DNA from: Ministeria vibrans ATCC 50519
Taxonomy: Eukaryota > Protista > Filasterea
Assembly: GCA_943704425.1 (NCBI GenBank)
Contig: CALSCP010001260.1
Coordinates: 15,862 to 71,916, forward strand
Direction: 5' to 3'
Length of the DNA stretch: 56,055 nucleotides
Part shown: one piece after another, positions 1,534 to 37,982 of the stretch
How positions within the stretch are numbered: position 1 is the first letter of the stretch
Layout of the letters: every line of letters begins with the position of its first letter
Translations under genes and position numbers: made by a program
Notes under the pieces: generated by a model
What the model saw: only the letters and a program-made list of their open reading frames with translations
Database searches by the model: none
What the model was told of the DNA's origin: nothing

Positions 1534-2317
1534 TTTTGCCTTTGTTTTTCCTCTCTTAGCTCACAATACTTGCACGTTTTTATTGTGGTGCGCGCCTTCC
1601 CGCAGTCATCGGGTCTGCCCGCTCGCTACACCGTGTCTGTATTGCGTCGCTCGAGCATGCCCAAGTTTGGTCCGAGTGCACCATCGCCTAATTTTGATCA
1701 TGGCCAGCCATTCCGCAACTTCCTGTTGGCCAAGGCAATGAATGCCGAGCACGCGTCACACTCGGTGCCCAAATTATTGAGTCTAAAGCATCGACGTCGT
1801 ACCCTCATGTTGCGCATGCTCGTCGGGGGATTTGCTTCGGCAGCCGCCGCCGTCGCCAAGGCTGAGCCAGAGACCAAGAAGAAGGCGGAGGAGATGTTAT
1901 CGCCTGCCAGTCGCAAATCAGCCGCCGAGCAGAGCGCTTTAACCTCTGCCGTCTCCTACGACGGCCTTCGCTCGAGTGCCAATTCTAGCGTCTTGCGTGG
2001 GTCTATCGAACGTGAGTCAACCTCCATGACTGCCATCGATGCCGTTGGTCTCTATCCGTCCTGCAACGACAGTTTTGAATCGGGTCTGCCCCGGCGTCGT
2101 CTCAGTTCGTCGCTCACCAAGAAGAATCTTGCCACATCCGTCTCACACGCCTTTCACGAGCGTCACCAATCTCGTGCCGTGGCCATTCCATCGTCGGACG
2201 AGGAGGAGTCCACTTCGCCCCAGCCACTGCGACATGTCGACTCCTCTACCACTGTCGTCAATCTCGCCTCGACCTCTACTCCATCTCCCTTGCACGTGTC
2301 CACTTCCGTTGCCCCAT

Positions 2318-2350
<33 letters not shown>

Positions 2351-3204
2351 ACGTCGCCAACGTCGCCGCCGCCGCAGCAGCAGCAGCAGTCGTCTTGCCT
2401 GCACCCACGCCCGCGCCTGTACCTGCGACAGTTGAACCTCGCAAGCGCCGCTTCTTTCACCTTGGACGATCTTCCGTGTCCGGCACTTCTGGTCATACGG
2501 GACCGTCGCGATCCAGTGCAGGCGGTGGGACTGCTCTCGACACGGACAACGATGTATATGGCATGTCGCGTGCCGTTTCCTCGTCGCCCGTGAACAAAGC
2601 GGGCCTCGGCGGCAGCCTCTCGGCGTCTTCGTACCCCTCCACTGGCTGTGGCGTTGGTAATGTAAGCCTTGGCAGCAATGCGTTGTCGACCTCGGTACTC
2701 TCGACTGTCGGTGCGAGCACCGCTCCTTTGCCCGCTTCTGGCTCCCAGGCGCCGTCGCCCACTGCGACAGACACGCACCGGCTCTCGGGTGGCTCTGAGC
2801 TTTACAAGCGCTTCATTGGTCTGTTGCCTTTTCGCGACCGCCACGTGAGCCCCAACATCGAGGAAGCGAGCGAGGCCGATGCCTCGTCGACGGTCAACGA
2901 CGAAGATGGCACCACATCGCCGCCCACCTCCCCACGTTTCCGACGCAAGAAGAGCAGCGGTGCCGTGTTGTCGCCAAAATCACGCAAGAGCTCTAGGGCC
3001 GTCGCCTTGCCCAATCGCTCGCCCTTAAGCACCTCTCGTGACAGCTCCGCCGCGTCAAGCACAACGTCGTTTGACGCTGCACAGCCAGTTCAGCGGCAAT
3101 CTAGCGACCAAGCGTCCACGTCGTCCCACCATACGCTCCTGGCGTCTTTCAACGAGACCATTGCGCTCCACTCGCAGTCGCGTCAGTCCGAAGATCTTGT
3201 TTGA
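3..3204 (+). CDS. Rap/Ran-GAP domain protein (5' partial; 3 exons visible: <3-1142, 1310-1395, 1560-3204)
   Basis: The spliced product contains RapGAP motifs YKFGVLY, F..FL.LLG..I.L.GFKGYRGGL, EIMFHVST..P, and across junctions QQ|VNRKKHLGNDIV...DSIR|SQYLHVFIVV, then FRNFLLAKAMNAE. Introns are GT-AG. The frame is open to the window edge (poly-Gly). It has poly-Q/H tracts and a long Ser-rich tail. Confidence 0.9.
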
Positions 3205-3429
3205 TCTTTTTTTTCTAATTTGTATCAGTTTGCCGTCCTATTCCCCACTGTAAGCTATCTCTCACTTTTTTTTCGCTCTCTCTTTCTCTCTCTCTCTCTT
3301 TCTCTCTCTCTTTCATTCGCTCTTCATGTCACTTTGATTCTTTCTCCCTCCTCTCTTGTACATGATTAAACAACAATAATAATTGAACTGGTACTTTTAA
3401 AAAAAACAATTGTACAAATAAGCGGGGCA

Positions 3430-5024
3430 TCACGAGTGTTGAATGTGCACAGCCTTGACATCGAGGTAGTCGTGGATGCCGAGGACGGAACCCTCGCGGC
3501 CCGAGCCGCTCTCCTTGACGCCGCCAAAAGGCGCGAGCGGGCTGCCAATGACGCCCGTGTTGACACCGACCATGCCGAAGGAGAGTGCCTCGCTCGCTCG
3601 CATCGTGCGTCCCAGATCGCGTGTGAACACGTAGGCTGCCAGACCCCAAGGTGTTGCGTTCGCTCGCGCGTACACCTCGGCCTCGTCATCGAAAGTGAAG
3701 AGTGCCGATACTGGCCCAAACGTCTCTTCGGTGCTCACCCGCATTGCGTCGTGGCACCCATCTACCACAGTGGGCACATAGAAGGTGTGTGTGCCGGCAA
3801 GACGCTCGCCACCGCAGCGCACTCGCGCACCCCGCTCCACGGCGTCGGCCACATGCGCGGCAACCTTGTCAACGGCACGCGCATTGATCAGCGGTCCAAC
3901 CGTCGTGGCCGGTGCGAATCCATCGCCGACTACCAGTTTGCTTGTTGCGGCACTGAGGCGCTGCGCGAACTCTTCGGCAATTTTGCGGTGAACAAAAATG
4001 CGATTGGCACTGATGCATGTCTGGCCTGCATTGCGGAACTTGCAGGCAATAGCGCCGGCAACGGCGACGTCGAGATCGGCGTCGTCAAACACAACGACGG
4101 GCGCATTCCCGCCAAGTTCCATGGAAACACGCTTAACGGTTGTCGCTGACTGTGCAAGCAAAATCTTCCCAACCATTGTGCTGCCGGTAAAGGAGATTTT
4201 GCGCACGCGCTCATCGTTGCAGAGTGCCTGACCGATGGAGGAGGCGCGATCACGGTCGCTCGTGACCACATTGACCACACCCGCCGGCACGCCCGCCTGC
4301 ATTGCCAGTTCGGCAAATGCCAAAGCCGACAGCGGAGTTTCTTCGGCAGGGCGCAACACCGAGGCACAGCCTGCGGCGAGGGCCGCGGCAAGTTTGCGCG
4401 CTGCCATTCCGTTAGGGAAGTTCCATGGCGTGATGAATCCGCACACGCCGACTGGTTGCCGCAGCACCATGGTCGTGCGTCCCGTCACCACAGACGGCAC
4501 TGTCATGCCATTCACGCGGAGTGCTTCGCCGGCGAAAAAGTCAATGTACGAAGCGCCATACGCGATCTCACCTCGCTAATACCAGAGTAAAATAAATTGA
4601 ATGATCATAGTTGTTATACTTCGGTTTGCCTCGTACCGCTTCCGACAAAGGTTTTCCTTGTTCTGCAGACAAAATCTGGGCCAAAGGCTCGGCATTGTCG
4701 AGGATGAGACGGTGCAGACGGGTGAGCATGCCGGCGCGTTCGGGTGCGGCGAGGCGGGCGAAGGACGCTTGCGCCTGGCTCGCAGCGCCAATTGCGTCGG
4801 TCGTCTCGTCGACGGTGCAGTGCGCAGCGTCGCTGAGTGTCGCGCCTGTTGACGGGTCGGTGATGGCGTAGGTCTGGGCGGCGTCTACAAAGCGGGGCAG
4901 GCCGTGTCAGCAGAGCAACGAGCGGGAGTGCAGATGAATGAATACGTTTCCATTCGCCATTGACCAGGTACTTTCCGTGCCTCAAAAGATTGGAGGGGAT
5001 GTTCGCAAGTTTGTTCTTGGCCAT
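3430..5024 (-). CDS. ALDH5A1: Succinate-semialdehyde dehydrogenase (ALDH family; exons 5024-4946, 4884-4637, 4575-3430)
   Basis: Motifs ITPWNFP, SFTGST, SMELGGNAP, KFRNAGQTC (catalytic Cys), EETFGP, PFGGVKESG.GREGS; junction GKPLSEA|RGEIAYGASY is typical of GabD/SSADH. Confidence 0.92.
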
Positions 5025-5271
5025 TTCAACTCGCTAGATTCTCAAGACTCAATAATGAAGAAAGGGATTAAAATAAAAATAATATAAATAACATTTATAC
5101 TTGATCGGGTTAAGTAGATGACAACCAATCGTGACAGAGTGGGTGAGTGAGTCAATGAGACAGTTAGACAGGCAGAGGTGTAGTCAGATGGTCAAATGTT
5201 GATAGGTATAATAATTATGATGGAAAAATTTGTACAAATGTTGAACTGTTTCTTTGCGGGGGTCTTTCGGA

Positions 5272-6441
5272 CTACATCTCGTCACCGTGCTCGGCCAGCT
5301 CGTGCGCATGGAGATCAGCAGCACAGCGAAACTCATCGCCGCAAATGGGACAAGAGGAGAGGGGCTGTTGCGTTTCTTGGAGAGAATGGTAGGAGGAGGA
5401 AGGAGAGAGGGACATGAGGGAGACGGGCGTGCCGCTCGAGCCTTCGTTGGACGACGACGACGACGACTCGTGTCTCGGTCGTGATGACGATAATGTGCCC
5501 CTACGCCGTGCACGCGAGCGCCTCACAAGATCTCGCGTCTCGGAGGGGGAGTGCGTGCGCAGGTGCGCTGCCACTGAGTTGTGGTGGCGGAAGCAGCGCG
5601 TGCAGCCGGGAACAGGACAGGTGAGTGGCTTCGCGCCACTGTGGATCATCTGATGGCGCCGCAGAACGCTGGCGAGAGTAAAGCTGTCGCCACAATCGTC
5701 GCAAACAAAGGGCCGCATATGAAAGTGGGCGGTAAGAACATGTAGCAAGACTTGGGTACGCGATCTGAAAGTCGTCTCCTTTTCGCACCCGCGCCAGTGG
5801 CAGCGGTGCACGCCCGTCTCAATGTGCTCCCCGACGTGTCTCTCAGCGATGTCTTGCCCATGCAGCTCAGCGCCGCACACGGTGCCGTCTGACTCCATCC
5901 AGGCACAAGTACCACTCACGGGACGCTGGGTGGCGGCGACACGTGCCGCTTTGCGTCGCTGGCGGGGTGTCATCAGCGCCGAGTCGCTCAGGCGGGAGCA
6001 ACTCGTTGTCGCTGGTGTGCCGGTAGTTGGGATCGCCATGTCGGCACGTGAGGCCGTGGCACTTGCAGTCGTGTTTGGGTGAGTATGGGCGGGAGAATGG
6101 CGCGGCAGAGGTGAGGGGTGCGAGAGGGCGGGGTTTGTTTGAAAGTGTGCGGGCGTTTGAAATGCTTCCTGGCTTCTCAGCGCATGAATGGGCGTCTTGC
6201 CGCGCTGATCAAATGTGGGGAAAGGGTAAGAGCGCATTGCAGTAGTTGTTGGAACTGGCGCGGCAGTTGTTGTCGCTCCTGGCGGAGTGTACGGGACTGG
6301 CGCAAAGTTAATCGGCGATCGTGTGACTTGAAGGTCGGGCTGCAGCAGGGGAGGCGGCGTGAAACGAGGCACGCGCGACGAGGCATGGTCAGGCGACTCT
6401 GATGGCCAAAAAAAGATGATCCAGGTGTCCATTAGAGCCAT
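5272..6441 (-). CDS. C2H2 zinc-finger transcription factor
   Basis: 389-aa ORF with consecutive C2H2 fingers (CHWRGC...H...H, CDDCG..F.....L.RH...H, linker HSGAKPL, CPVPGC..H...H) and a C-terminal finger. Start codon uncertain. Confidence 0.85.
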   Translation of the reverse strand: MALMDTWIIFFWPSESPDHASSRVPRFTPPPLLQPDLQVTRSPINFAPVPYTPPGATTTAAPVPTTTAMRSYPFPTFDQRGKTPIHALRSQEAFQTPAHFQTNPALSHPSPLPRHSPAHTHPNTTASATASRADMAIPTTGTPATTSCSRLSDSALMTPRQRRKAARVAATQRPVSGTCAWMESDGTVCGAELHGQDIAERHVGEHIETGVHRCHWRGCEKETTFRSRTQVLLHVLTAHFHMRPFVCDDCGDSFTLASVLRRHQMIHSGAKPLTCPVPGCTRCFRHHNSVAAHLRTHSPSETRDLVRRSRARRRGTLSSSRPRHESSSSSSNEGSSGTPVSLMSLSPSSSYHSLQETQQPLSSCPICGDEFRCAADLHAHELAEHGDEM

Positions 6442-7459
6442 CCGAACGCTGTGAAAGAAAACGATTGTTACTGTTGTTTTTTTTTCTCAAGGATTCTCTA
6501 GAAATTTTCTCTCAGGGGCGATAAGAAAACACACGAGCGAGCTGGAGAGTGGGCACGGCCGTCGACTCACTCGTCGGTCGGTCGGTTGATAGTGCACTCT
6601 TGCGCTGGGAGTCTGGGAGCAAAGCAGCTTGTGTGGAGGTGGATCGTGCAGTGGTGTGAAAACAAAACGGCTTTTTTGGCGAACTGGGTCGCGACGGGTG
6701 CTGGCGATTGCCAATGGTACGCGACGTCTCCCGTGCACGATAAGGACCCGATAGAGATTGTTATGTACCTTTAAGAGACCGAAAAAGCACGAAATAAGCG
6801 AAATAAAAGTGTTTGAAAGGCCATTAGAGGCGAGGTGTCAAGTAATTGCGAATGATCGGGCGAGGTGTGACTTCCGTCGATGTGCACCAGGAGAAGGTCG
6901 TGTTTCCGCCGAATTCTCTACGATGCACTCAGTAATTGTCCATTACGTGTTATCGTGCGCGATTTTGGGTGATTGCAGTCCAGATGGGCCCAAACGAGAG
7001 ATAATGGTTTTCTAAAAAAAGCGTGTGAAAATGTTGTCGCCTCAAACTTGACATAAAAATCGGCAATCACACGCTGAGTGCACCTCCATACAATGTATTT
7101 TTGGCATTTAGTTGCCTCCTAGGGTCCGGATGCGCGTGGTGGTGACCTGGGTCGGCGCAGGGGGGCTGGGCCCATTCGGCGACAGTCCGAGACGGACCTA
7201 AGATGCCTCAGTCTGGTGGAAAACACTCTTGTGGCTCTACGAGTGCCATGGTATGACTGCAATCCAAGGTATCCGAAGGAATTTGGCCTCGCCTATGGCC
7301 GTGAAAGCGGAACTTTTGAGGGTGTTAGAGTAAATTGTTCGATAAGGAAATGAAAAAAAAAAAAGGCTATCGGATAAGAGAAGAGCCTGGCGTAGCGGAC
7401 GATGCAGCCAATCATCTTGAATGGGTTGATGTGGGCTTTGAGCGCCTAGCGAGGGCAAG

Positions 7460-7820
7460 GCAGGCGACGTGAGATGTTTCGATGTGGAACGAGTGAGTCA
7501 CAGTTTGGGTTCAGGTTTGGTCAGAGCGAATATGCAAGCAAGCAAGCAAGGTGGGCAGGGGCCGGGGCAGGATGTGTCCACGACTTACTCTATGCTGGAT
7601 GAGCATGGTACGCGCCCAGTGGCGAATGACAAGCGACGTGGGATGTTTCGATCTGGGCGATACCCAAACCATTTGCGGTTTTAGTCAGGGGCGAATGTTT
7701 GGCGAATGCAAGCAAGGTGGGCTGGGGCAAGGAAGAATGCGTCCACGACTCACTCCACGCTAAATAAGCATTGTACGCCCAATGGCGAATGACAAGTGAC
7801 GTGAGAATGTTTCGATATGA
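7460..7820. repeat. Degenerate tandem repeat, ~165-170 bp period, just over 2 copies
   Basis: Recurring blocks gacgtg(a/g)gatgtttcgat (3x), gcaagcaaggtgggc (2x), gtccacgact.act (2x), tggcgaatgacaag (2x). Confidence 0.7.
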
Positions 7821-27746: not shown

Positions 27747-28210
27747 GTTTTATGTTGACCTGCGAACAGGCCGATGGAATAGTTGGGCCAAAATGTGCTA
27801 TTCAATTCTATTTTGGTTTGAATATTATATTTACTCGTAAACTTACCGGTAGTCAAGTATACTGAGTACACTCCTAATGCTTGCAGTAAAAGTGGTTAGT
27901 GCTAAGCGCACACTAACGAATAAGGTTGGCGGAATCGTGTTTCACTTGAATGACTCTCTCAAGTGTCGACTCACTCGACTCAGAGCCAGTCGAGTGGGTC
28001 GACTGTACACTGTACAGACTACAGACTCAGACTGTACTCACTGTACTAGTGTGCTTCTATTTAGTATTCTGAGTATTTCTCTTAGGAAACGTCATATCGA
28101 TTATCGAATTATCAATCCAAGATTACACGAGGGTTCACACAACTCCTCGTAATGAATAACTAATGATTAATGCCAATTTAGTATTAATTGTTCGCCCCTT
28201 CTCTCTGACG

Positions 28211-29742
28211 ATGCGCATCTGTCTCTTTGGGCTTGGATATATTGGCACTGTCAATGCCGCGTGTCTGGCGGGTCCGCTGGGCCACACTGTGGTCGGGGTG
28301 GACGTAAGCGCTTCGCGTGTTAGCACCATTAATGCAGGCCGCTCGCCGTTTGCATTTGAGGCGCGGACCGATGAGCTCATTGCCGCGGCAGTGAAGGAGG
28401 GTCGCTTGCGCGCCACGACAGACCCCCTTGAGGCCCTTAGCGACCCCGATCTAGACGTGATCATAGTCTGTGTTTCGGCACCTCCTCGACATCCCCTTGG
28501 CTACACCGTGGCGCTCTCGCCGTCGCCCATTGACACATCGTGTCTGGAGGATACTATTCGATCGATCCGTCGGGGACTTGTCGCTCGTCTTGACACCACC
28601 AAAGACTCAGCCAAATTGCCCATTCCCGTCTTAAATCGCTGCACCTGCGCCCCCAACGACCACGCAAGACTAACCCAGCTGCTGTTGCGCGAACCCGTCG
28701 ACGATTCCACCCCGACCGACGTCGACCCAGTGCCCCTGACCGCCTACGTTTGCCATCCCGAGTTTCTTCGCGAGGGCAATTCCGTCTCTGATTTCCTCGA
28801 CGCCCCACGGCTTGTCTTTGGCTACGATCAAGGCGCACCGGCCGTGCTACACACGCGCGACGTCTGCGTGTCCCTTTCTGCTGGGTTACCTGGTGAGATC
28901 AGCCTCCTACAGATTCACCCCACCGTCAATGCTGTGTTTTGTAACATGCTCCAATTGTGCTTGGTTGAGTAGGTCAACAGTTCTTCATGTCCATTGGCGA
29001 CGCATCCGTTGTAAAGCTCGCCGACAATTGGTTTCATGCACTCAAAGTGACATTTGCCAACGAGGTGGGTGGCATTTGCCACGCGTGGAGACTCAATGGG
29101 GCTCGTGTGATGGAGTGTCTTGCAGCCGACCCCGTCCTCAACTGTTCCCGTGCCTACTTGCGTCCCGGTCTGCCCTTTGGTGGGAGCTGTCTGCCAAAGG
29201 ACGTTGCGTGTATGCGTGACGCTGTGTGTGTCGGTGATGAGAGTGGAGAGGCGGCGGCGACAGGGGCGGCGCTCCAACCTCCTCGCTTTCTGCTGACCGG
29301 TGTGGTGGACTCTAACCAGGCGCAGATGCGTCGTATTGTGGTGCGTGCGGGCGCGTCGCTCTCTGCCGAACGCCCTCGCATGCTTTTTGTCGGTATTGCC
29401 TTCAAGTGTGGCACTTCCGACTTGCGTGGCAGTCCGCTCGTCGAACTTGCCCTTGAAACCCTCGCCGCCTACCCTCACGCACGTCTGGCGCTCTTCGACG
29501 CGTGTGTTGCGCCCGCCGAGCTTCCCGCTGCGCTTAGCAGCGACTCGGAACGGGTCACGTACCACACATCCATTAACGACATGCCTGAAGATGGCGCCGT
29601 GGCTCTTATTGGCCACAAGCTCTCGCACAACGACGCCCTGGCACTAGTCTCTCGTCTTGCCCACTGTCGTCTCGTTCTCGACTTTGTCAATCAGCGCGAG
29701 CTGCACGACCTTGACGGCTACGACGGCGCCTACTGGAATTGA
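28211..29742 (+). CDS. algD: GDP-mannose 6-dehydrogenase-like (AlgD subfamily of UDP-glucose/GDP-mannose dehydrogenases); exons 28211-28892, 28973-29742
   Basis: MRICLFGLGYIG.V.A.CL...GH.VVGVDVS......IN.G.SP, PEFLREG, K...N.FHALKVTFANE.G, D..LN.SR.YLRPG..FGGSCLPKDV, AFK.GTSDLR.SP.VELA, C-terminal G..W. Confidence 0.85.
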
Positions 29743-31601: not shown

Positions 31602-34600
31602 TATAATAGTGAATGTCAGAAAGAAAAAAATTAACTAACCGTTCCGTTTCACCCACCACTTGTGAAGATTTAGATTGCACACCAGAGCCTGCCCAGTGCG
31701 ACGCACAAGCTCTGCTCTCACCACGTCTCCGTCTCGGTATCGCTCAGGGTGTTTGGCGACACTTTCGGGAAGGAAGAGTGGACGGAATGCGTCGGTGGGG
31801 TGTGCGGGTACCACCACAGCAGAGCCGCGCCAACCCCACCGCAGAGTGCGCGTCGACTCACACACAGTCTCGGCCAACTTCGTCCACGTCGCCCCGCACC
31901 TGCCTGGCGCCTCACTCAGCAATTCCACACGAATGAACCGCTCGTTGCTGCTGAGTCGAAGTCGCACAGGGACACATCCGTCCATGGCAAGTGCATTGGT
32001 GCATCGTTGAGTCGCTTCGATGGGACTGTCAGGCGGACATGCGCGCCACAGTGCCACCACCACCAGATGAAATGTGGCGAGGGACACGGGAAGCACCTCC
32101 CAGTCGCCGGCGGCACTGCTTATCATCTGGTAGAGGAACAGAACAGCAGGGGCGGGCGAGGCGCTGGAGGAGAAGGAAGCGTCGTCGGGCAGCAGCATGG
32201 GCACCAACAGCAAGTCCCCGTGACGCCTCGCCAGACTCAGGTGCTCCAGACACTCCATGAACGTGCCAACGTCACCCACATCACCGCCACAGAGTAGGGG
32301 GTCCTCGCTGTCTTTGGCTGCCGTCCACACGAGCCACTCCGCCGCTTCGAGGGGAAATCCCGCCGCAGACGTTGTGCGCGACTCGTCCAGTCTTTGTAGG
32401 ATTTTCTCTGTGCGGGTCAGATCGGAAGCACGACCCGCCTCGACGACTTTCTTGAGCATGTCCAGGGCGCGGGTGCTTGACGCCTGTCCCCATTGCGCCA
32501 TCACCACCGAGCAGAGCAGTTCTAGCGCCGCAATCAGATGAGGGATGTCAAAGACGACCGTGTCCGTCTCGCGCACATCTTGAGACGTCGCGTTCTCACG
32601 GCACACCACAATGTCCGCGGCGGACTCCAGATAGGGTACCAATTCAGTGCGAATCATTGAGTCGTCCAAAACCAACGAAGAGAGAGTGATGCGAGGGTCG
32701 TCGTTGAGAACGAGTGAGCCCAGATCTGACACGCGCGACATGAGAGCAATCTTCTTCTCTCGTGCGCGGCGCCCAATCAAGTCTTGCGCACACACATACT
32801 CCATGGGTAGAGTACGCGGGCGCACAGCATCATGCATCGCCTTTGAAAGTTGTCCTAGTCCAATCCTTTTCTTGCTGCCAACTGCAAAGAACGCGAGGGG
32901 GGTGGGGGCGCTTGGTCGCATGAGGTGATTACCCAAGACCACGCCGACAAGCCGGAAGATCGCATCTGAGACTCTCTGGAGGAGAGCGGCTGGGGCTGTG
33001 TCGTTGGGAAAAGTGTCGAGGTGGGTGGCGACGATGATGACTTTGAAGTAGGAGTGCTTTGTGTCGGGGACTTGGTGCATGATCATGTGCGCCCACTTGG
33101 AAATGTGCTCGTACTGGCGCTGGGCGGTCGTTGGGTCAGACATGGCGAAGAGATCAAAGACGATGAGGTAGAGGGACTCGGAGCCCATGAAAAGGGCCGG
33201 GAGGGAGTCAAACATCGCTTCGCCTGAGAGGGAGAACATGAAGAGTTGAGCACAAGGTAAAGAAAAAGAAAATGAGAGTATAAGGGAAAGAAACCAAAAG
33301 TAGAGAGACATCAAGGGAGGATAGAAAAGGGACAAAGATACAGAGAAAGTTCAAGGTTCAAGACTCGGAGAGCGAGAGAAATAGTGTGCGCGTGCTTAGT
33401 GTATCGTTAGTGTGTGTGCTTAGTGTGACTAGTGTGTGAGTTTAGTGTGTATGTGTGTTAAGTGTGCGTGTGTGCTTAGTGTGTGTGAGTGTGCTTAGTG
33501 CTTAGTGCGTTGAGTGTGCGCTTAGTGTGCGGGTGTGCTTAGTGTGCGGGTGTGCTGTGTGCATAGTGTGTGTGTGTTTAGCGTGTGTGAGTGTGTCCAA
33601 GTGCGTACGCTTAGTGCTTAGTGCGTGTGCTCAGTATGCTTAGTGTGTGCATGTGCATGGGAAGAGGTACAGACCAGAAAACAGCAAAAAGAAAGTCAAA
33701 GATGAAAAAAAAATACGCATACCGGCAAAGTCAAAGGTCTCAAGGTCGATGTGGCCCTCGCGCAAGTCAGACTTGAGAAGAGTAAGAACGGTTTGCATAG
33801 TGGCGCTGATGATATGCGGCTGCGTGGGTGTCTCTTTTTCCATGAGAGAGGGAGTCGGGACTCGGATGTGCGGTGAGCAGCGCGTAGCAGGCGGGTTTGA
33901 CGATGAGGAGGGGGATGCCGAACGTGTTGCTTGTGGAGCGGGTGTCAGGGAGTTATTGTCCTGTGCGACAGCCGCATCAGTCACTCCGCTCTCCTCCGGC
34001 ACTGAGATGAGACTTGCTACGTGAAACTCGTCCTGGGGCACTGACTTGAAAAGACCTGTACGGCCATCGAAGGTCATGCGTAGTCGCTTCATGCGGGTCG
34101 CCACTGAGCGATCCATTAGGTTGGGGAGAGAGTTACCCTGCAGGGCCGCAAACAGAGCAGTCTTGCCGGCAAGGACAGCACCCAGAGAGAGTAATTTGAT
34201 TGAGCGGTGATGAACAGAGCCACGCTGGAGAGCAGCATGAAATGCACATTGATACGGGTCTATTATCACAGGTTAAGTCAAAAACAATTCAGGCTTAAAT
34301 TCAGGACCTTTCGCGGCTTCGAACTGCACAAAAAACGCCTTTGAAGCTTTCTTCCATTGCGCGCGGTCTGCAATCCACAACGTCATGACAAAGCAATCGA
34401 CACAACCCTACTTACCAACTAGAAAAGGTTCATTTGCGCATTGTGAGTGTTTTTCAAACTTACCAACTAAGAAAATGCAAAGAACATCACAAGAGTGCAA
34501 ACCACAGTCCAAATCAGTCACTCACAATTTCTCACTATTCACAAACTTACCAACTACGACAATGCAAAGAACATCACAAGAATGCAAATCACAATCCAAA

Positions 34601-36990
34601 TCAGTCACTCACAATTTCTCACTATTCACAAAACTTACCCCCTAAGACAATGCAAAGAACATCACAAGAATGCAAATCACAGTTCAAATCAGTCACTCAC
34701 AATTTCTCACTATTCACAAACTTACCAACTAAGACAATGCGAAGAACATCACAAGAGTGCAAAACACAGTCCAAATCAGTCACTCACAATTTTTCACTAT
34801 TCACAAAACTTACATTCTAAGACAATGCAAAGAACATCACAAGAGTGCAAACCACAGTCCAAATCAGTCACTCACAATTTCTCACTATTCACAAAACTTA
34901 CCAACTACGACAATGCAAAGAACATCACAAGAATGCAAATCATAGTCCAAATCAGTCACTCACGATTTCTCACTATTCACAAAACTTACATTCTAAGACA
35001 ATGCAAAGAACATCACAAGAATGCAAATCACAGTCCAAATCAGTCACTCACAATTTCTCACTATTCACAAAACTTACCACCTAAGAAAGACAATGCAAAG
35101 AACATCACAAGAGTGCAAATCACAGGCCAAATCAGTCACTCACAATTTCTCACTATTCACAAAACTTACCCTCTTAGACAATGCAAAGAACATCACAAGA
35201 GTGCAAACCACAGTCCAAATCAGTCACTCACAATTCCTCACTAATCACAAAACTTACTCGCTAAGACAATGCAAAGAACATCACAAGAGTGCAAATCACA
35301 GTCCAAATCAGTCACTCACAATTCCTCACTAATCACAAAACTTACTCGCTAAGACAATGCAAAGAACATCACAAGAGTGCAAACCACAGTCCAAATCAGT
35401 CACTCACAATTTCTCACTATTCACAAAACTTACTCCCTAAGACAATGCAAAGAACATCACAAGAGTGCAAATCACAGTCCAAATCAGTCACTCACAATTT
35501 CTCACTATTCAAAAAACTTACATTCTAAGACAATGCAAAAAACATCACAAGAGTGCAAATCACAGTCCAAATCAGTCACTCACAATTTCTCACTATTCAC
35601 AAAACTTACCACCTAAGAAAGACAATGCAAAGAACATCACAAGAGTGCAAACCACAGGCCAAATCAGTCACTCACAATTTCTCACTATTCACAAAACTTA
35701 CTCCCTAAGACAATGCAAAGAACATCACAAGAGTGCAAACCACAGTCCAAATCAGTCACTCACAATTTCTCACTATTCACAAAACTTACCAACTAAGACA
35801 ATGCAAAGAACATCACAAGAGTGCAAATCACAGTCCAAATCAGTCANNNNNNNNNNNNNNNNNNNNNNNNNNNNCTCCCTAAGACAATGCAAAGAACATC
35901 ACAAGAGTGCAAACCACAGTCCAAATCAGTCACTCACAATTTCTCACTATTCACAAAACTTACTCCCTAAGACAATGCAAAGAACATCACAAGAGTGCAA
36001 ATCACAGTCCAAATCAGTCACTCACGATTCCTCACTATTCACAAAACTTACCAACTAAGACAATGCAAAGAACATCACAAGAGTGCAAATCACAGTCCAA
36101 ATCAGTCACTCACAATTTCTCACTATTCACAAAACTTACTCCCTAAGACAATGCAAAGAACATCACAAGAGTGCAAACCACAGGCCAAATCAGTCACTCA
36201 CAATTTCTCACTATTCACAAAACTTACCAACTAAGGCAATGCAAAGAACATCACAAGAGTGCAAATCACATTCCAAATCAGTCACTCACAATTTCTCACT
36301 ATTCACAAAACTTACTCCCTAACATAACGAGCCAGAGTAGCGAATCAATACAAACTCGTGTCAGGTATACAGTCAAATAGCCCATATATCAACATAGAGA
36401 ATCTTACAGTCTACAGAGAGGTCAGGTCGTTAGAGAATTTCAAACGAGCATTTCCTCTTACAAACTGCAAACCACACAACGCCACCGATTCAAGCAAAAT
36501 AAAAATACGTTAGAACAGAACACTATCCATGATCAAGCAAGTCACGAACCTCCTACAGACAAGTTTATTGTTTTAGTTCGCGTCGACCAAACCAAACCGA
36601 CTTTCGCTTTACTGGCACAGAGATTGTTGAGAGACGGCGCGAATCCCTTATTCCCTTTATACGTAATTTCCTCCAGGTGGTCTCGCAACTGCAGAATGGC
36701 TGTTGGGAGCGTCCTGAGCTGGCAATTCCCGACGTCAAGCAACTTCGTCCCGAAAAACAGTCGACCCGTGAGAACCACTCGCCTTTCTCCCCCCTTTCCC
36801 ATACCTTAAGCTTCTTGAACTCTCCGATCCAGTCGGGAAGCACGCGAAGCGGGTTGCCTGTCAGCAGCAATTCCTGTAGAGTATCGGCAAGAACACGAAT
36901 TTCGTCTGAGAGAGAAGTGAGCCCCATCTCCCTCAGGTTTAAGGAATGGGACATTTGGGCTTCATGAATGCGTTCCTGTATAGAAGGCAT
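30714..36990 (-). CDS. Roco-family protein: LRR - microexon-encoded linker - Roc GTPase - COR-like - caspase-like (peptidase C14) domain
   Basis: Exons 36990-36805 and 36742-36602 encode LRRs; ~26 3-nt exons follow. A short exon (34323- or 34367-34308) leads to 34259-33723 (IKLLSLG...AGKT P-loop ... ETFDFAG|), then 33223-31640 (SLYLIVFDL, IIVATHLD, COR-like), then 31555-30714 (VLIVGVSRY, IVHLIGHG, VFCDFCNSG His-Cys dyad). All joins are GT-AG and frame-consistent. Confidence 0.85.
33385..33655. repeat. Degenerate (GT-rich, cttagtgtg) minisatellite within a Roco intron
   Basis: Repeated gcttagtgtg/ttagtgtg units interspersed with (gt)n. Confidence 0.75.
34455..36320 (-). repeat. Tandem array of ~88-bp units (at least 21; assembly gap 35847-35874); each unit is an ~85-nt intron plus a 3-nt exon
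   Basis: Minus-strand unit: gtaagttttgtgaatagtgagaaattgtgagtgactgatttggactgtg(a/g)tttgcactcttgtgatgttctttgcattgtcttag|NNN|. The triplet varies (TTG, GGA, AAT, GTG, CGA, GGG, AGG); the rest is nearly invariant. Confidence 0.92.
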
Positions 36991-37982
36991 GTCTATGTGA
37001 CAAAGAAACTGAGAAAGATATAACTGATAAGTGATAACTGATTAAATACGTAATAAATGATCGATACAAACCAGACCTTGTTTATTATTAATTTTCTTTT
37101 TTATGTCCCTCTCAGGATATGGTGTGTCTGGTGCCTATCGCGTCACTTGTCTGGTCAATGGTCATCATCCAACCTGTGCTCGCTTTTTTTTATGCTCCTG
37201 TAGCTTAACAAGTGGTTCTGAGGTGTTTGTGATTGTGATTGATAATCCCCTGTGACCCTGCCAGTGGACTGCTTTGAGAAACAATGTTCGGTTTGAGAAA
37301 ACAACTCTATTGGTTTGTACGTTCTAAGCTCGAGTATTCTTGAAGGCCGCTGCATGCTTTTTTTTGCCGCTGCATGCTTGCAAGGTTCAACAGACACCTT
37401 ATGGTGTCAGACATAAGCTTTCACTCGAGGTATGGCGTACCATTGCGATTGCCTCACTCGATAGCGACGAGACAGCACTCTGACCTGCCATTGTTCTCCT
37501 ATGTTATCTGTAGAGTTTTGGTTGAGCTTGCAAGGCGATCTCATATTGGCTGTGTTTTTGTGTAGTGACTGTATCATAAAGGTGTGCGTGTGGGAGTTTG
37601 CCTTTAGCGCGGAAATTAAAATACGCACACTAATACGGCTCGTCTCGGGCAAACCGCGCGTCCCCGTCCCAAATGCTTGCCATTCTCATGCTCTGTCTCT
37701 TACGGCAGTTCAAGGTGGTGCCGCTAAAAAAAATCAATAATAATGATGCTTCGCATATTATTGATTTTTTCCGCTGGGCGACGACGTCTGCCACCTTCGT
37801 ACTGCTCCGTGTTGTTTAATTATTAAACTTTCAGGTGACTTTCATTGATATAAGCCAACATAAGACCCTCAGTCTTGATGAAGTTTTCAATACAACACTG
37901 CCTGTCACTAGCAGCATTGCTGACTGAGAAAACCCGACGCACCCATCTCTTTCACACCCAGCCTGACATGTAGGCGATCTGT

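Follow-up and report, generated by a model that had tools for sequence, protein, structure and literature searches.

Tandem three-nucleotide microexons between the predicted leucine-rich repeats and Roc-like GTPase domain of a Ministeria vibrans gene

The Locus and Its Microexon Array

The stretch of DNA analyzed here (the window) comprises 56,055 nucleotides from Ministeria vibrans ATCC 50519 (assembly GCA_943704425.1, contig CALSCP010001260.1, positions 15,862 to 71,916 of the forward strand), and carries on its minus strand a gene that encodes putative leucine-rich repeats (LRRs) and, further downstream, a putative Roc-like GTPase domain. Between these two parts lies a tandem array of exons of only 3 nt, which Tandem Repeats Finder (TRF) registers as an 88-bp tandem array at 34456-36322 (21.2 copies, 89% matches), with a higher-order period of 356 bp in the same array. 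Read on the minus strand, each unit starts with a GTAAGT donor and ends with a pyrimidine tract and a YAG acceptor, followed by exactly 3 nt up to the next donor, and each unit of the repeated core, 80-92 bp in length, is one complete short intron plus 3 exonic bases. Such AG|NNN|GT units are visible 26 times between 34416 and 36552, which is a lower bound since an assembly gap lies within the array, and both splice sites are present at all 26 where the sequence is readable, the donor of the unit at 35878 being inside the gap. The acceptors of the repeat units are TAG, with a lone AAG before the AGG unit at 35172. Of the matches to YAG-NNN-GTAAG in the window, 23 lie on the minus strand and one on the plus strand. 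A first-pass annotation, made from the letters alone, had listed the triplets and their order, and both were reproduced on the minus strand, together with the AAG exception, the seven triplet types and the absence of any stop triplet.

In transcript order, the array is preceded by an exon that encodes two LRRs (36805-36991), a GT..AG intron of 62 nt (36743-36804) and the last LRR exon (36613-36742, 130 nt), which ends AAT CTC TGT GCC A|GTAAAG. After a further intron of 60 nt (36553-36612) comes the first microexon, GAG (36550-36552), which has a weak GTTCGT donor, followed by TTT (36462-36464) behind a unique 85-nt intron and ACT (36408-36410) behind a unique 51-nt intron (36411-36461), so that the triplets start at 36552, 36464, and 36410. 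The repeated core (34464-36318) then contributes 22 visible microexons separated by introns of 84-89 nt with about 95% identity to each other, from GGA starting at 36318 to TTG starting at 34466; these read GGA TTG GGA TTG GGA GGA on the 5' side of the gap (35847-35874) and TTG GGA GTG AAT GGA CGA CGA AGG GTG AAT TTG AAT TTG GGG TTG TTG on its 3' side. The last microexon, TTG (34416-34418, starting at 34418), comes after a 45-nt intron (34419-34463) and is itself followed by a unique intron of 48 nt (34368-34415); overall, the unique introns that flank the core measure 45-89 nt. Downstream follow an exon of 60 nt (34308-34367), a GT..AG intron of 48 nt (34260-34307) and the exon at 33723-34259, which carries a P-loop (LGAVLAGKTAL) and forms the start of the Roc-like domain.

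Splicing of the Microexons in RNA

Assembled contigs from four public runs (X1, X2, X9, and X17) were compared with positions 33300-37050 of the window, and the triplet strings were compared locally with the short contig ends that continue beyond the aligned parts. X1, X2, and X9 come from three studies with three organism labels, and their RNA nature is a guess of the tool used. GT..AG joints at the introns 34260-34307 (34259 to 34308) and 36743-36804 (36742 to 36805) are present in all three, and neither occurs in X17, the contigs of which cover introns and exons alike. Because of the intron-less joints in the former three runs and their absence from the last, we take X1, X2, and X9 as RNA and X17 as DNA.

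Both ends of the array were found in spliced form. An X1 contig with a depth of 150 joins 33748-34259 to 34308-34368 and continues for another 29 letters, the reverse complement of which, AGG GTG AAT TTG AAT TTG GGG TTG TTG TT, agrees with the last ten genomic triplets, in order, at 29 of 29 positions. The same AGG GTG AAT... string is held by X9, and both runs read TTG TTG TTG|ACCGCG into the 60-nt exon. At the opposite end, a second X1 contig joins 36991-36805 to 36742-36613 and goes on with (G)AG TTT ACT GGA TTG GGA TTG GGA GGA, matching the assembly at 26 of 26 positions up to the gap, with GCCA GAG TTT ACT at the exon junction. Single small introns were also removed in separate joints, namely the 60 nt before GAG in X9 (36551/2 to 36612/3) and the 51 nt between TTT and ACT in X2 (36410 to 36462, with GT..AG ends), and a loose end in X2 reads CTGTGCCA|GAG. 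As the first-pass annotation had proposed, the window triplets are real exons. In RNA they follow each other as in the genome, placed between the last LRR exon and the 60-nt exon, and this includes GAG with its weak donor (X1, X2, and X9); triplet strings connected with the exon on either side of the array occur in X1, X2, and X9. A direct joint between the LRR exon and the downstream exon, lacking the triplets, had been named there as an observation that would speak against this; we looked for it (36613-34367) and found none among the contigs of the three RNA-like runs. No joint at a microexon or ordinary intron occurs in the DNA-like run X17.

The RNA contigs also revise two of the exon limits that had been proposed. 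The end of the last LRR exon, placed at 36602 in the annotation, lies at 36613 (CCA|GTAAAG) according to the donor of the paralogs and the contigs, whose matches stop at 36612/36613 and give way to the microexon string. A suggested downstream exon of 16 nt is unused, and the RNA shows the 60-nt exon 34367-34308 in its place, which is conserved in paralogs and covered by X1 record 2 and X9 record 25 (34308-34368). The first of the two LRR exons is supported by X1 record 5 and X2 record 20, and the P-loop exon by RNA-like contigs spanning 33722/33748-34259.

In a number of contigs from X2 and X9, one or two introns are still present although the adjoining ones have already been removed. Forms retaining the 48-nt intron 34368-34415 are among those in X2 and X9, and intron retention is also seen at 35226-35168. 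These contigs look like splicing intermediates, and they show that intron removal along the array does not strictly proceed from 5' to 3'. Further, a loose end in X9 consists of the tail of an intron of an 80-bp repeat family, related to the 88-bp unit and described below, followed by TTG AGG AGG AAT GG, which is the triplet order of another locus in the assembly (C2647), and therefore at least two loci are expressed as spliced triplets.

In X2, the triplet series is TTG AGG AAT TTG AAT TTG GGA TTG TTG TTG, as compared with CGA AGG GTG AAT TTG AAT TTG GGG TTG TTG TTG in the window, while its flanking exons differ from the window at about 4 of 867 positions. This hints that the array changes faster than its flanks, although contigs cannot tell strain differences from exon skipping.

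The gap is bounded by 'GGA g' and 'tgactgatttgg' and lies within one intron unit, for which 30 bases would be required vs. the 28 N present. Coming from the 5' side, the X1 contig reads GGA GGA and then CGA G.., while the assembly resumes with TTG after the gap, and this mismatch leaves continuity across the gap unsupported. The same contig, on entering the gap, has 116 letters that find no place on the window, equivalent to up to 39 triplets. Probably, several further units are hidden or collapsed in the gap. Their number would not affect the reading frame provided that every unit contributes 3 nt, and phase 1 applies on either side of the gap.

Reading Frame and Predicted Peptide

The frame of the microexons is set by the RNA-defined exons on either side: the 130-nt LRR exon leaves 1 nt of a codon and the 60-nt exon opens with 2 nt that complete one, so that all microexons are in phase 1, and every codon is divided between two of them, the first base coming from one microexon and the other two from its successor. 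The annotation had preferred a phase-0 peptide, which these exons overturn; its alternative, a phase-1 reading through the acceptor before 34367, is the one borne out by the RNA contigs. The predicted phase-1 peptide reads ..NNLCA-RVYWIGIGR..[gap]..GSEWTTKGEFEFGVVV-DRAQWKKASKAFFVQFEAAKDPYQCAF..LGAVLAGKT, in which the end of GSEWTTKGEFEFGVVV joins DRAQWK, and the 60-nt exon, (G)AC CGC GCG CAA TGG AAG .. GCG AAA G, supplies D-RAQWKKASKAFFVQFEAAK and is in phase 1 at both ends. From these phases it follows that the array would encode at least 26 residues, forming a linker that connects the LRR domain with the Roc-like GTPase.

Stop codons were counted over 219 microexons from nine arrays. In phase 1 there is a single stop, compared with 4.4 expected from shuffles of the triplet order (P=0.035), and it sits in a 5'-truncated copy (C312, where GAT GAT gives T|GA), while phase 2 contains 13 stops vs. 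13.5 expected. Moreover, the differences TTT/TCT, ACT/ATT, and TCT/TTT among paralogs are synonymous in phase 1 (GTT/GTC, TAC/TAT, and TTC/TTT) and radical in phase 0, and the first residues among paralogs are K/R-V-Y/F-W; in no other phase are the changes among these first microexons synonymous or conservative. The kept frame, the depletion of phase-1 stops and the synonymous paralog differences lend indirect support to a possible translation of the segment.

We set aside the lack of phase-0 stops as evidence on the frame. None of the 32 triplet types is a stop, for which our own rough estimate gives a chance of about 0.14, and this is partly because triplets ending in AG, which are absent inside the arrays, are avoided, as they would create a competing acceptor.

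Paralogous Arrays in the Assembly

Pattern and BLAST searches covered the whole 29.7-Mb assembly. Two YAG-NNN-GTAAG sites 57-86 nt apart occur 188 times genome-wide, whereas the reversed pattern, used as a control, gave 0 and 1. About 15 places carry either the 88-bp unit or a related one of 80 bp (about 78% identical). Copies always stand in gene orientation and only within one paralogous gene module, in keeping with the earlier claim that the repeat is not a plain satellite; it is tandem, but adds exons to RNA. Isolated unit matches (C173, C2596, C2854, C2414, C1251, and C1600) represent either truncated copies or the ends of arrays that abut a gap or the end of a contig.

Every intact copy of the module has the same order, i.e., a last LRR exon ending in NLCA, three microexons, the repeated core, one or two TTG and a RAQWK-like exon. 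After the last LRR exon, the paralogs have the donor GTGCAA|GTAAGA, and their first microexon appears as tgtag|RAG|gtt (AAG in paralogs). The first three microexons are RAG, TTT/TCT, and ACT/TTT/ATT/TCT, with unique conserved introns, and the final TTG microexons likewise have unique short introns and are followed by an exon that begins (A/G)CC.. and encodes the RAQWK-like residues, so the ends of the encoded segment are conserved as K/R-V-Y/F-W ... V-V-D/G-R-A-Q/R-W-K. In all, an array comprises 13 to 45 triplets, and the series of one locus bears no relation to that of another. All 219 microexons at the array loci are exactly 3 nt long, although the units themselves range from 62 to 95 nt.

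What follows the module differs. A P-loop exon lies downstream of the array in the window gene and in C312, C1049, and C73, while in C915, and probably in C43, a coiled coil and a protein kinase follow (Pfam Pkinase E=2.6e-19). In C915 (L019, G000:C915:1-8257), an array of 43 microexons of the 80-bp family (1599-4889) has an LRR exon before it and a QQRLE coiled coil after it, and the protein kinase domain comes next (kinase open reading frames at 5297-7813); the module is therefore common to genes with different effector domains.

Three other loci deserve mention. C73 (L017, G000:C73) holds two array-bearing paralogs head to tail on one 7-kb contig, with arrays at 4601-7252 and 1-437 of the minus strand, and the array of the first paralog has at least 34 microexons and runs off the contig end. 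In C2854 (L015, G000:C2854:6679-6996) there is an array remnant, the 5' flank of which is replaced by another repeat; its 5-nt unit, AG|CATGG|GTAAG, is the sole departure from 3 nt that we saw and is consistent with decay of a dead copy. In C312 (L014, G000:C312:8586-8588), one TTG microexon has a GC donor (GCAAGA).

Variation Within and Between Arrays

Introns within an array are 94-99% identical, as opposed to 84-89% between arrays of the 88-bp family (a difference of 11-16%), and each array of this family was therefore expanded or homogenized separately. The annotation had noticed in the window that variation is concentrated in the triplet, and the same holds for the arrays: per-site diversity is 0.64-0.78, near the maximum, at all three triplet positions vs. 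0.02-0.29 at the intron ends, much of the latter being due to indel shifts. Neutral satellite decay cannot yield this contrast. It fits cassettes that would be duplicated and reshuffled by recombination in identical introns, with selection possibly keeping the triplets different or driving them apart.

Two other roles for the introns themselves were tried and rejected. A Rfam search of 34300-36700 with permissive thresholds returned no RNA family match that would point to a small nucleolar RNA (snoRNA) or another RNA within them. As for intron folding as a bridge between splice sites, the folding of five introns did not surpass that of shuffled sequences (z -1.9 to +0.6).

Origin of the Arrays and Alternative Explanations

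Taken together, the best overall explanation, which we hold with considerable confidence, is that these are tandem, real 3-nt exons that encode a linker in phase 1, and that the array would grow in cassettes by recombination in near-identical introns. Short introns with strong sites would probably be recognized individually, i.e., by intron definition, each removal leaving 3 nt, so that the upstream exon would grow by 3 nt per splicing step. The arrays could lengthen or shorten by duplication or unequal recombination in the near-identical introns, in which case one codon would be gained or lost with no frameshift. Diversity among the triplets might be favored by selection, or at the least be tolerated, while the introns stay homogeneous, and the outcome would be a fast-evolving, variable linker or surface between the LRRs and the effector domain of candidate receptors.

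A number of points weigh against this explanation. No contig spans the entire array, so no single molecule with every microexon was seen. The runs were identified as RNA from their intron-less joints, their type being otherwise only guessed. The X1 contig and the assembly disagree from the gap onward, and X2, which bears another organism label, has a different triplet series; for these differences, strain difference, hidden units and skipping are inseparable. Phase 0 is stop-free too, so stop statistics alone leave the frame unfixed. Pfam support for Roc is weak, and COR went undetected. Finally, a function of the segment and selection for its diversity are what we infer from these patterns.

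The most conventional alternative is a plain intronic minisatellite, in which the whole 2.2 kb would be removed as one intron and the splice-like motifs would be incidental. TRF indeed gives an ordinary 88-bp tandem repeat, and a direct joint would preserve the frame too. However, that joint is found in none of the RNA-like contigs while several contain ordered triplets, and splice sites and exact 3-nt spacing are kept in 219 units over diverged intron families, leaving this alternative next to no credibility. Near-identical introns at many positions are, on the other hand, the hallmark of introners, and the repeated intron might be a mobile introner-like element inserted many times into a pre-existing exon. 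We regard this as extremely improbable, given that BLAST and pattern searches of the assembly found copies only head to tail in one paralogous module and never singly in unrelated genes, that isolated matches are truncated array ends and that the 356-bp period shows block duplication.

The microexons might also be spliced to no purpose, as by-products of a decaying or untranslated gene family in which triplet diversity is neutral drift. This would agree with the truncated copies C312, C2854, C173, C2596, and C1600, the lack of protein evidence and the low complexity of the encoded peptide. It is nonetheless quite improbable, since the frame is kept from the LRR exon to the P-loop exon, phase-1 stops are depleted, the conserved ends of the segment carry synonymous changes, and the 3-nt length is invariant in intact copies and broken in a truncated one; drift, moreover, would not give triplets that are about 30% identical next to introns that are 95-99% identical. 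Another possibility, and the mechanism envisaged in the first-pass annotation, is combinatorial skipping of microexons that yields many isoforms per gene and somatic, Dscam-like diversity. As the annotation had stated, any subset of the exons preserves the frame, and the X2 series lacks single triplets relative to the window (AGG AAT.. for AGG GTG AAT.., and AAT GGA TTG). Its further statement, made for phase 0, that every subset is stop-free does not carry over to phase 1, where some skips create stops, e.g., AAT joined to AGG gives T|AG. X2 also differs by a substitution (GGG>GGA) besides its organism label, so strain differences explain its series equally well, the last ten triplets are complete and ordered in X1 and X9, and isoform mixtures are unmeasurable from assembled contigs. 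We consider such combinatorial skipping unlikely.

Returning to real phase-1 exons that grow as cassettes, it is conceivable, though we lean against so strong a version, that the arrays are a dedicated diversity generator for candidate immune receptors, in which [intron + 3 nt] cassettes, unequal recombination and possibly regulated skipping would rewrite the linker one residue at a time, and that the architecture has perhaps arisen independently in unrelated eukaryotes.

Comparison with Known Systems and Wider Occurrence

The closest known analogs are the micro-exon genes (MEGs) of schistosomes, with exon sizes of 3-81 bp (PMC10526429). Like the window array, these have very short symmetric exons in runs, the frame is kept whatever is included, and the products are variable. 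However, a schistosome MEG consists mostly of microexons of mixed size, the introns between them are long (up to 5 kb) and unrelated, and the product is a small secreted protein, while the arrays of this assembly have up to 45 consecutive 3-nt exons and near-identical tandem introns of 77-89 nt, and encode one part of a large multidomain protein. The two are unrelated in sequence, and the array, an internal segment of a multidomain LRR-GTPase or LRR-kinase gene whose introns measure 45-89 nt, falls outside the MEG family.

Evolution by exon shuffling has also been proposed for the ROCO and NB-ARC-TPR genes of brown algae, which contain LRR arrays with one exon per repeat (PMC3341825; PMC11378527). 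Similar to what is predicted for the window gene, brown-algal ROCO genes combine LRRs with a Roc-like GTPase, have tandem in-phase exon cassettes and are candidates for receptor diversification. Their cassettes are 72-bp exons in phase 2 that each encode one whole LRR (PMC11378527), whereas the window cassette has 3 nt, is in phase 1 and is positioned after the LRR domain; the two LRR exons seen in RNA, one with at least 187 nt and the other with 130 nt, have introns of phase 0 and phase 1, and are not shuffled cassettes of the brown-algal kind. Microexons are mentioned neither in these two papers (PMC3341825; PMC11378527) nor in a large brown-alga genome preprint.

Isolated 3-nt microexons have been described in animals and plants, and single animal examples include those in cytohesin-1 and RPS24 (PMC6314551; PMC11162997). 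As in the window, the animal ones have canonical splice sites, are included in mRNA and add one residue. They differ in being isolated, regulated cassette exons with long introns, and do not form arrays of tens. At the ratchet points of long introns in Drosophila, AG and GT are juxtaposed with zero exonic bases, and removal is stepwise with nothing left in the mRNA. Ratchet points and the window units share an acceptor that is almost immediately followed by a strong GTAAGT donor, but the window keeps 3 nt per step, and no zero-length exon occurs among the 219 units. A satellite-like repeat in which each unit is one intron plus one short exon is also a feature of the SNORD115/116 snoRNA host genes, which consist of tandem intron/exon units (PMC3413130). 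In that case, the intron carries a snoRNA and the exons are non-coding, while in the window there is no RNA family and no intron structure signal, and the exons are in frame in the coding sequence.

In a full-text literature search, we found no description of tandem 3-nt exon arrays, and for microexon arrays or tandemly repeated introns only the snoRNA host genes surfaced; the silence of the searched collection is not proof of absence. As far as we can tell, the feature is an undescribed, extreme variant of microexon architecture. It indicates that the spliceosome is able to process tens of consecutive 3-nt exons, far beyond the isolated ones known, and it lends itself to testing intron definition and in what order introns are removed. 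For LRR-GTPase and LRR-kinase families, already proposed as fast-evolving receptors, it would add a second and more extreme cassette system, in which the unit of change is one residue. Masking of satellites would hide such arrays elsewhere.

A three-site AG|NNN|GTAAG pattern was also scanned over metagenome contigs, where most matches were satellites with an invariant triplet. Runs of 11-19 consecutive AG|NNN|GTAAG units, 58-95 nt apart, with variable and stop-free triplets, are present on three contigs of clearly different organisms: JAAGOD010070760.1 (L034, minus strand, 66-1379, GC 0.33), Ga0105054_10104496 (L059, plus strand, 3-1262, GC 0.57), in which the intron bodies have diverged and the splice sites are conserved, and WNEZ01390701.1 (L058, minus strand, 413-1148, GC 0.27). 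These may be independent 3-nt microexon arrays, in which case the architecture would be wider than this genome, and such matches in unrelated contigs make a broader survey worthwhile.

Gene Identity and Neighboring Sequences

The LxxLxLxxNxL pattern of LRRs is legible in the exons at 36991-36805 and 36742-36613, for which Pfam gives LRR matches of only E ~0.1. The P-loop GAVLAGKT is present in the P-loop exon, which matches Pfam Roc at E=0.028 (profile 31-84), and the next open reading frame (31635-33335) matches it at E=0.084 (profile 63-119); both are below the gathering score, and the two matches take complementary profile positions on consecutive exons. These matches and the P-loop lend weak support to the label 'Roco'. 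The 566 amino acids of the frame at 31635-33335 have no Pfam or PDB match to COR, and their homologs are unnamed metagenome proteins.

Sequence searches of PDB gave no informative match. Protein searches retrieved only short unspliced fragments with the P-loop exon, none of which carries the microexon segment, and only two unspliced genomic open reading frames with the LRR frame. As the public proteins retrieved for the gene family are unspliced fragments without the segment, these receptor-like proteins are wrong in current protein sets. The contigs that encode the closest foreign homologs (44-63% identity) have no array; upstream, they carry either WD40 repeats or only a short stretch of sequence. 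Two ENA metagenome scaffolds (L025 and L026) encode homologs of the part after the P-loop with 61-63% identity, and have WD40 upstream instead of LRRs and no microexon array.

Elsewhere in the window, at 28163-29742 of the plus strand, two adjoining open reading frames match the N-terminal and central domains of a UDP-glucose/GDP-mannose dehydrogenase (Pfam E=1.6e-25 and 1.2e-17), and are probably parts of one intron-split gene.

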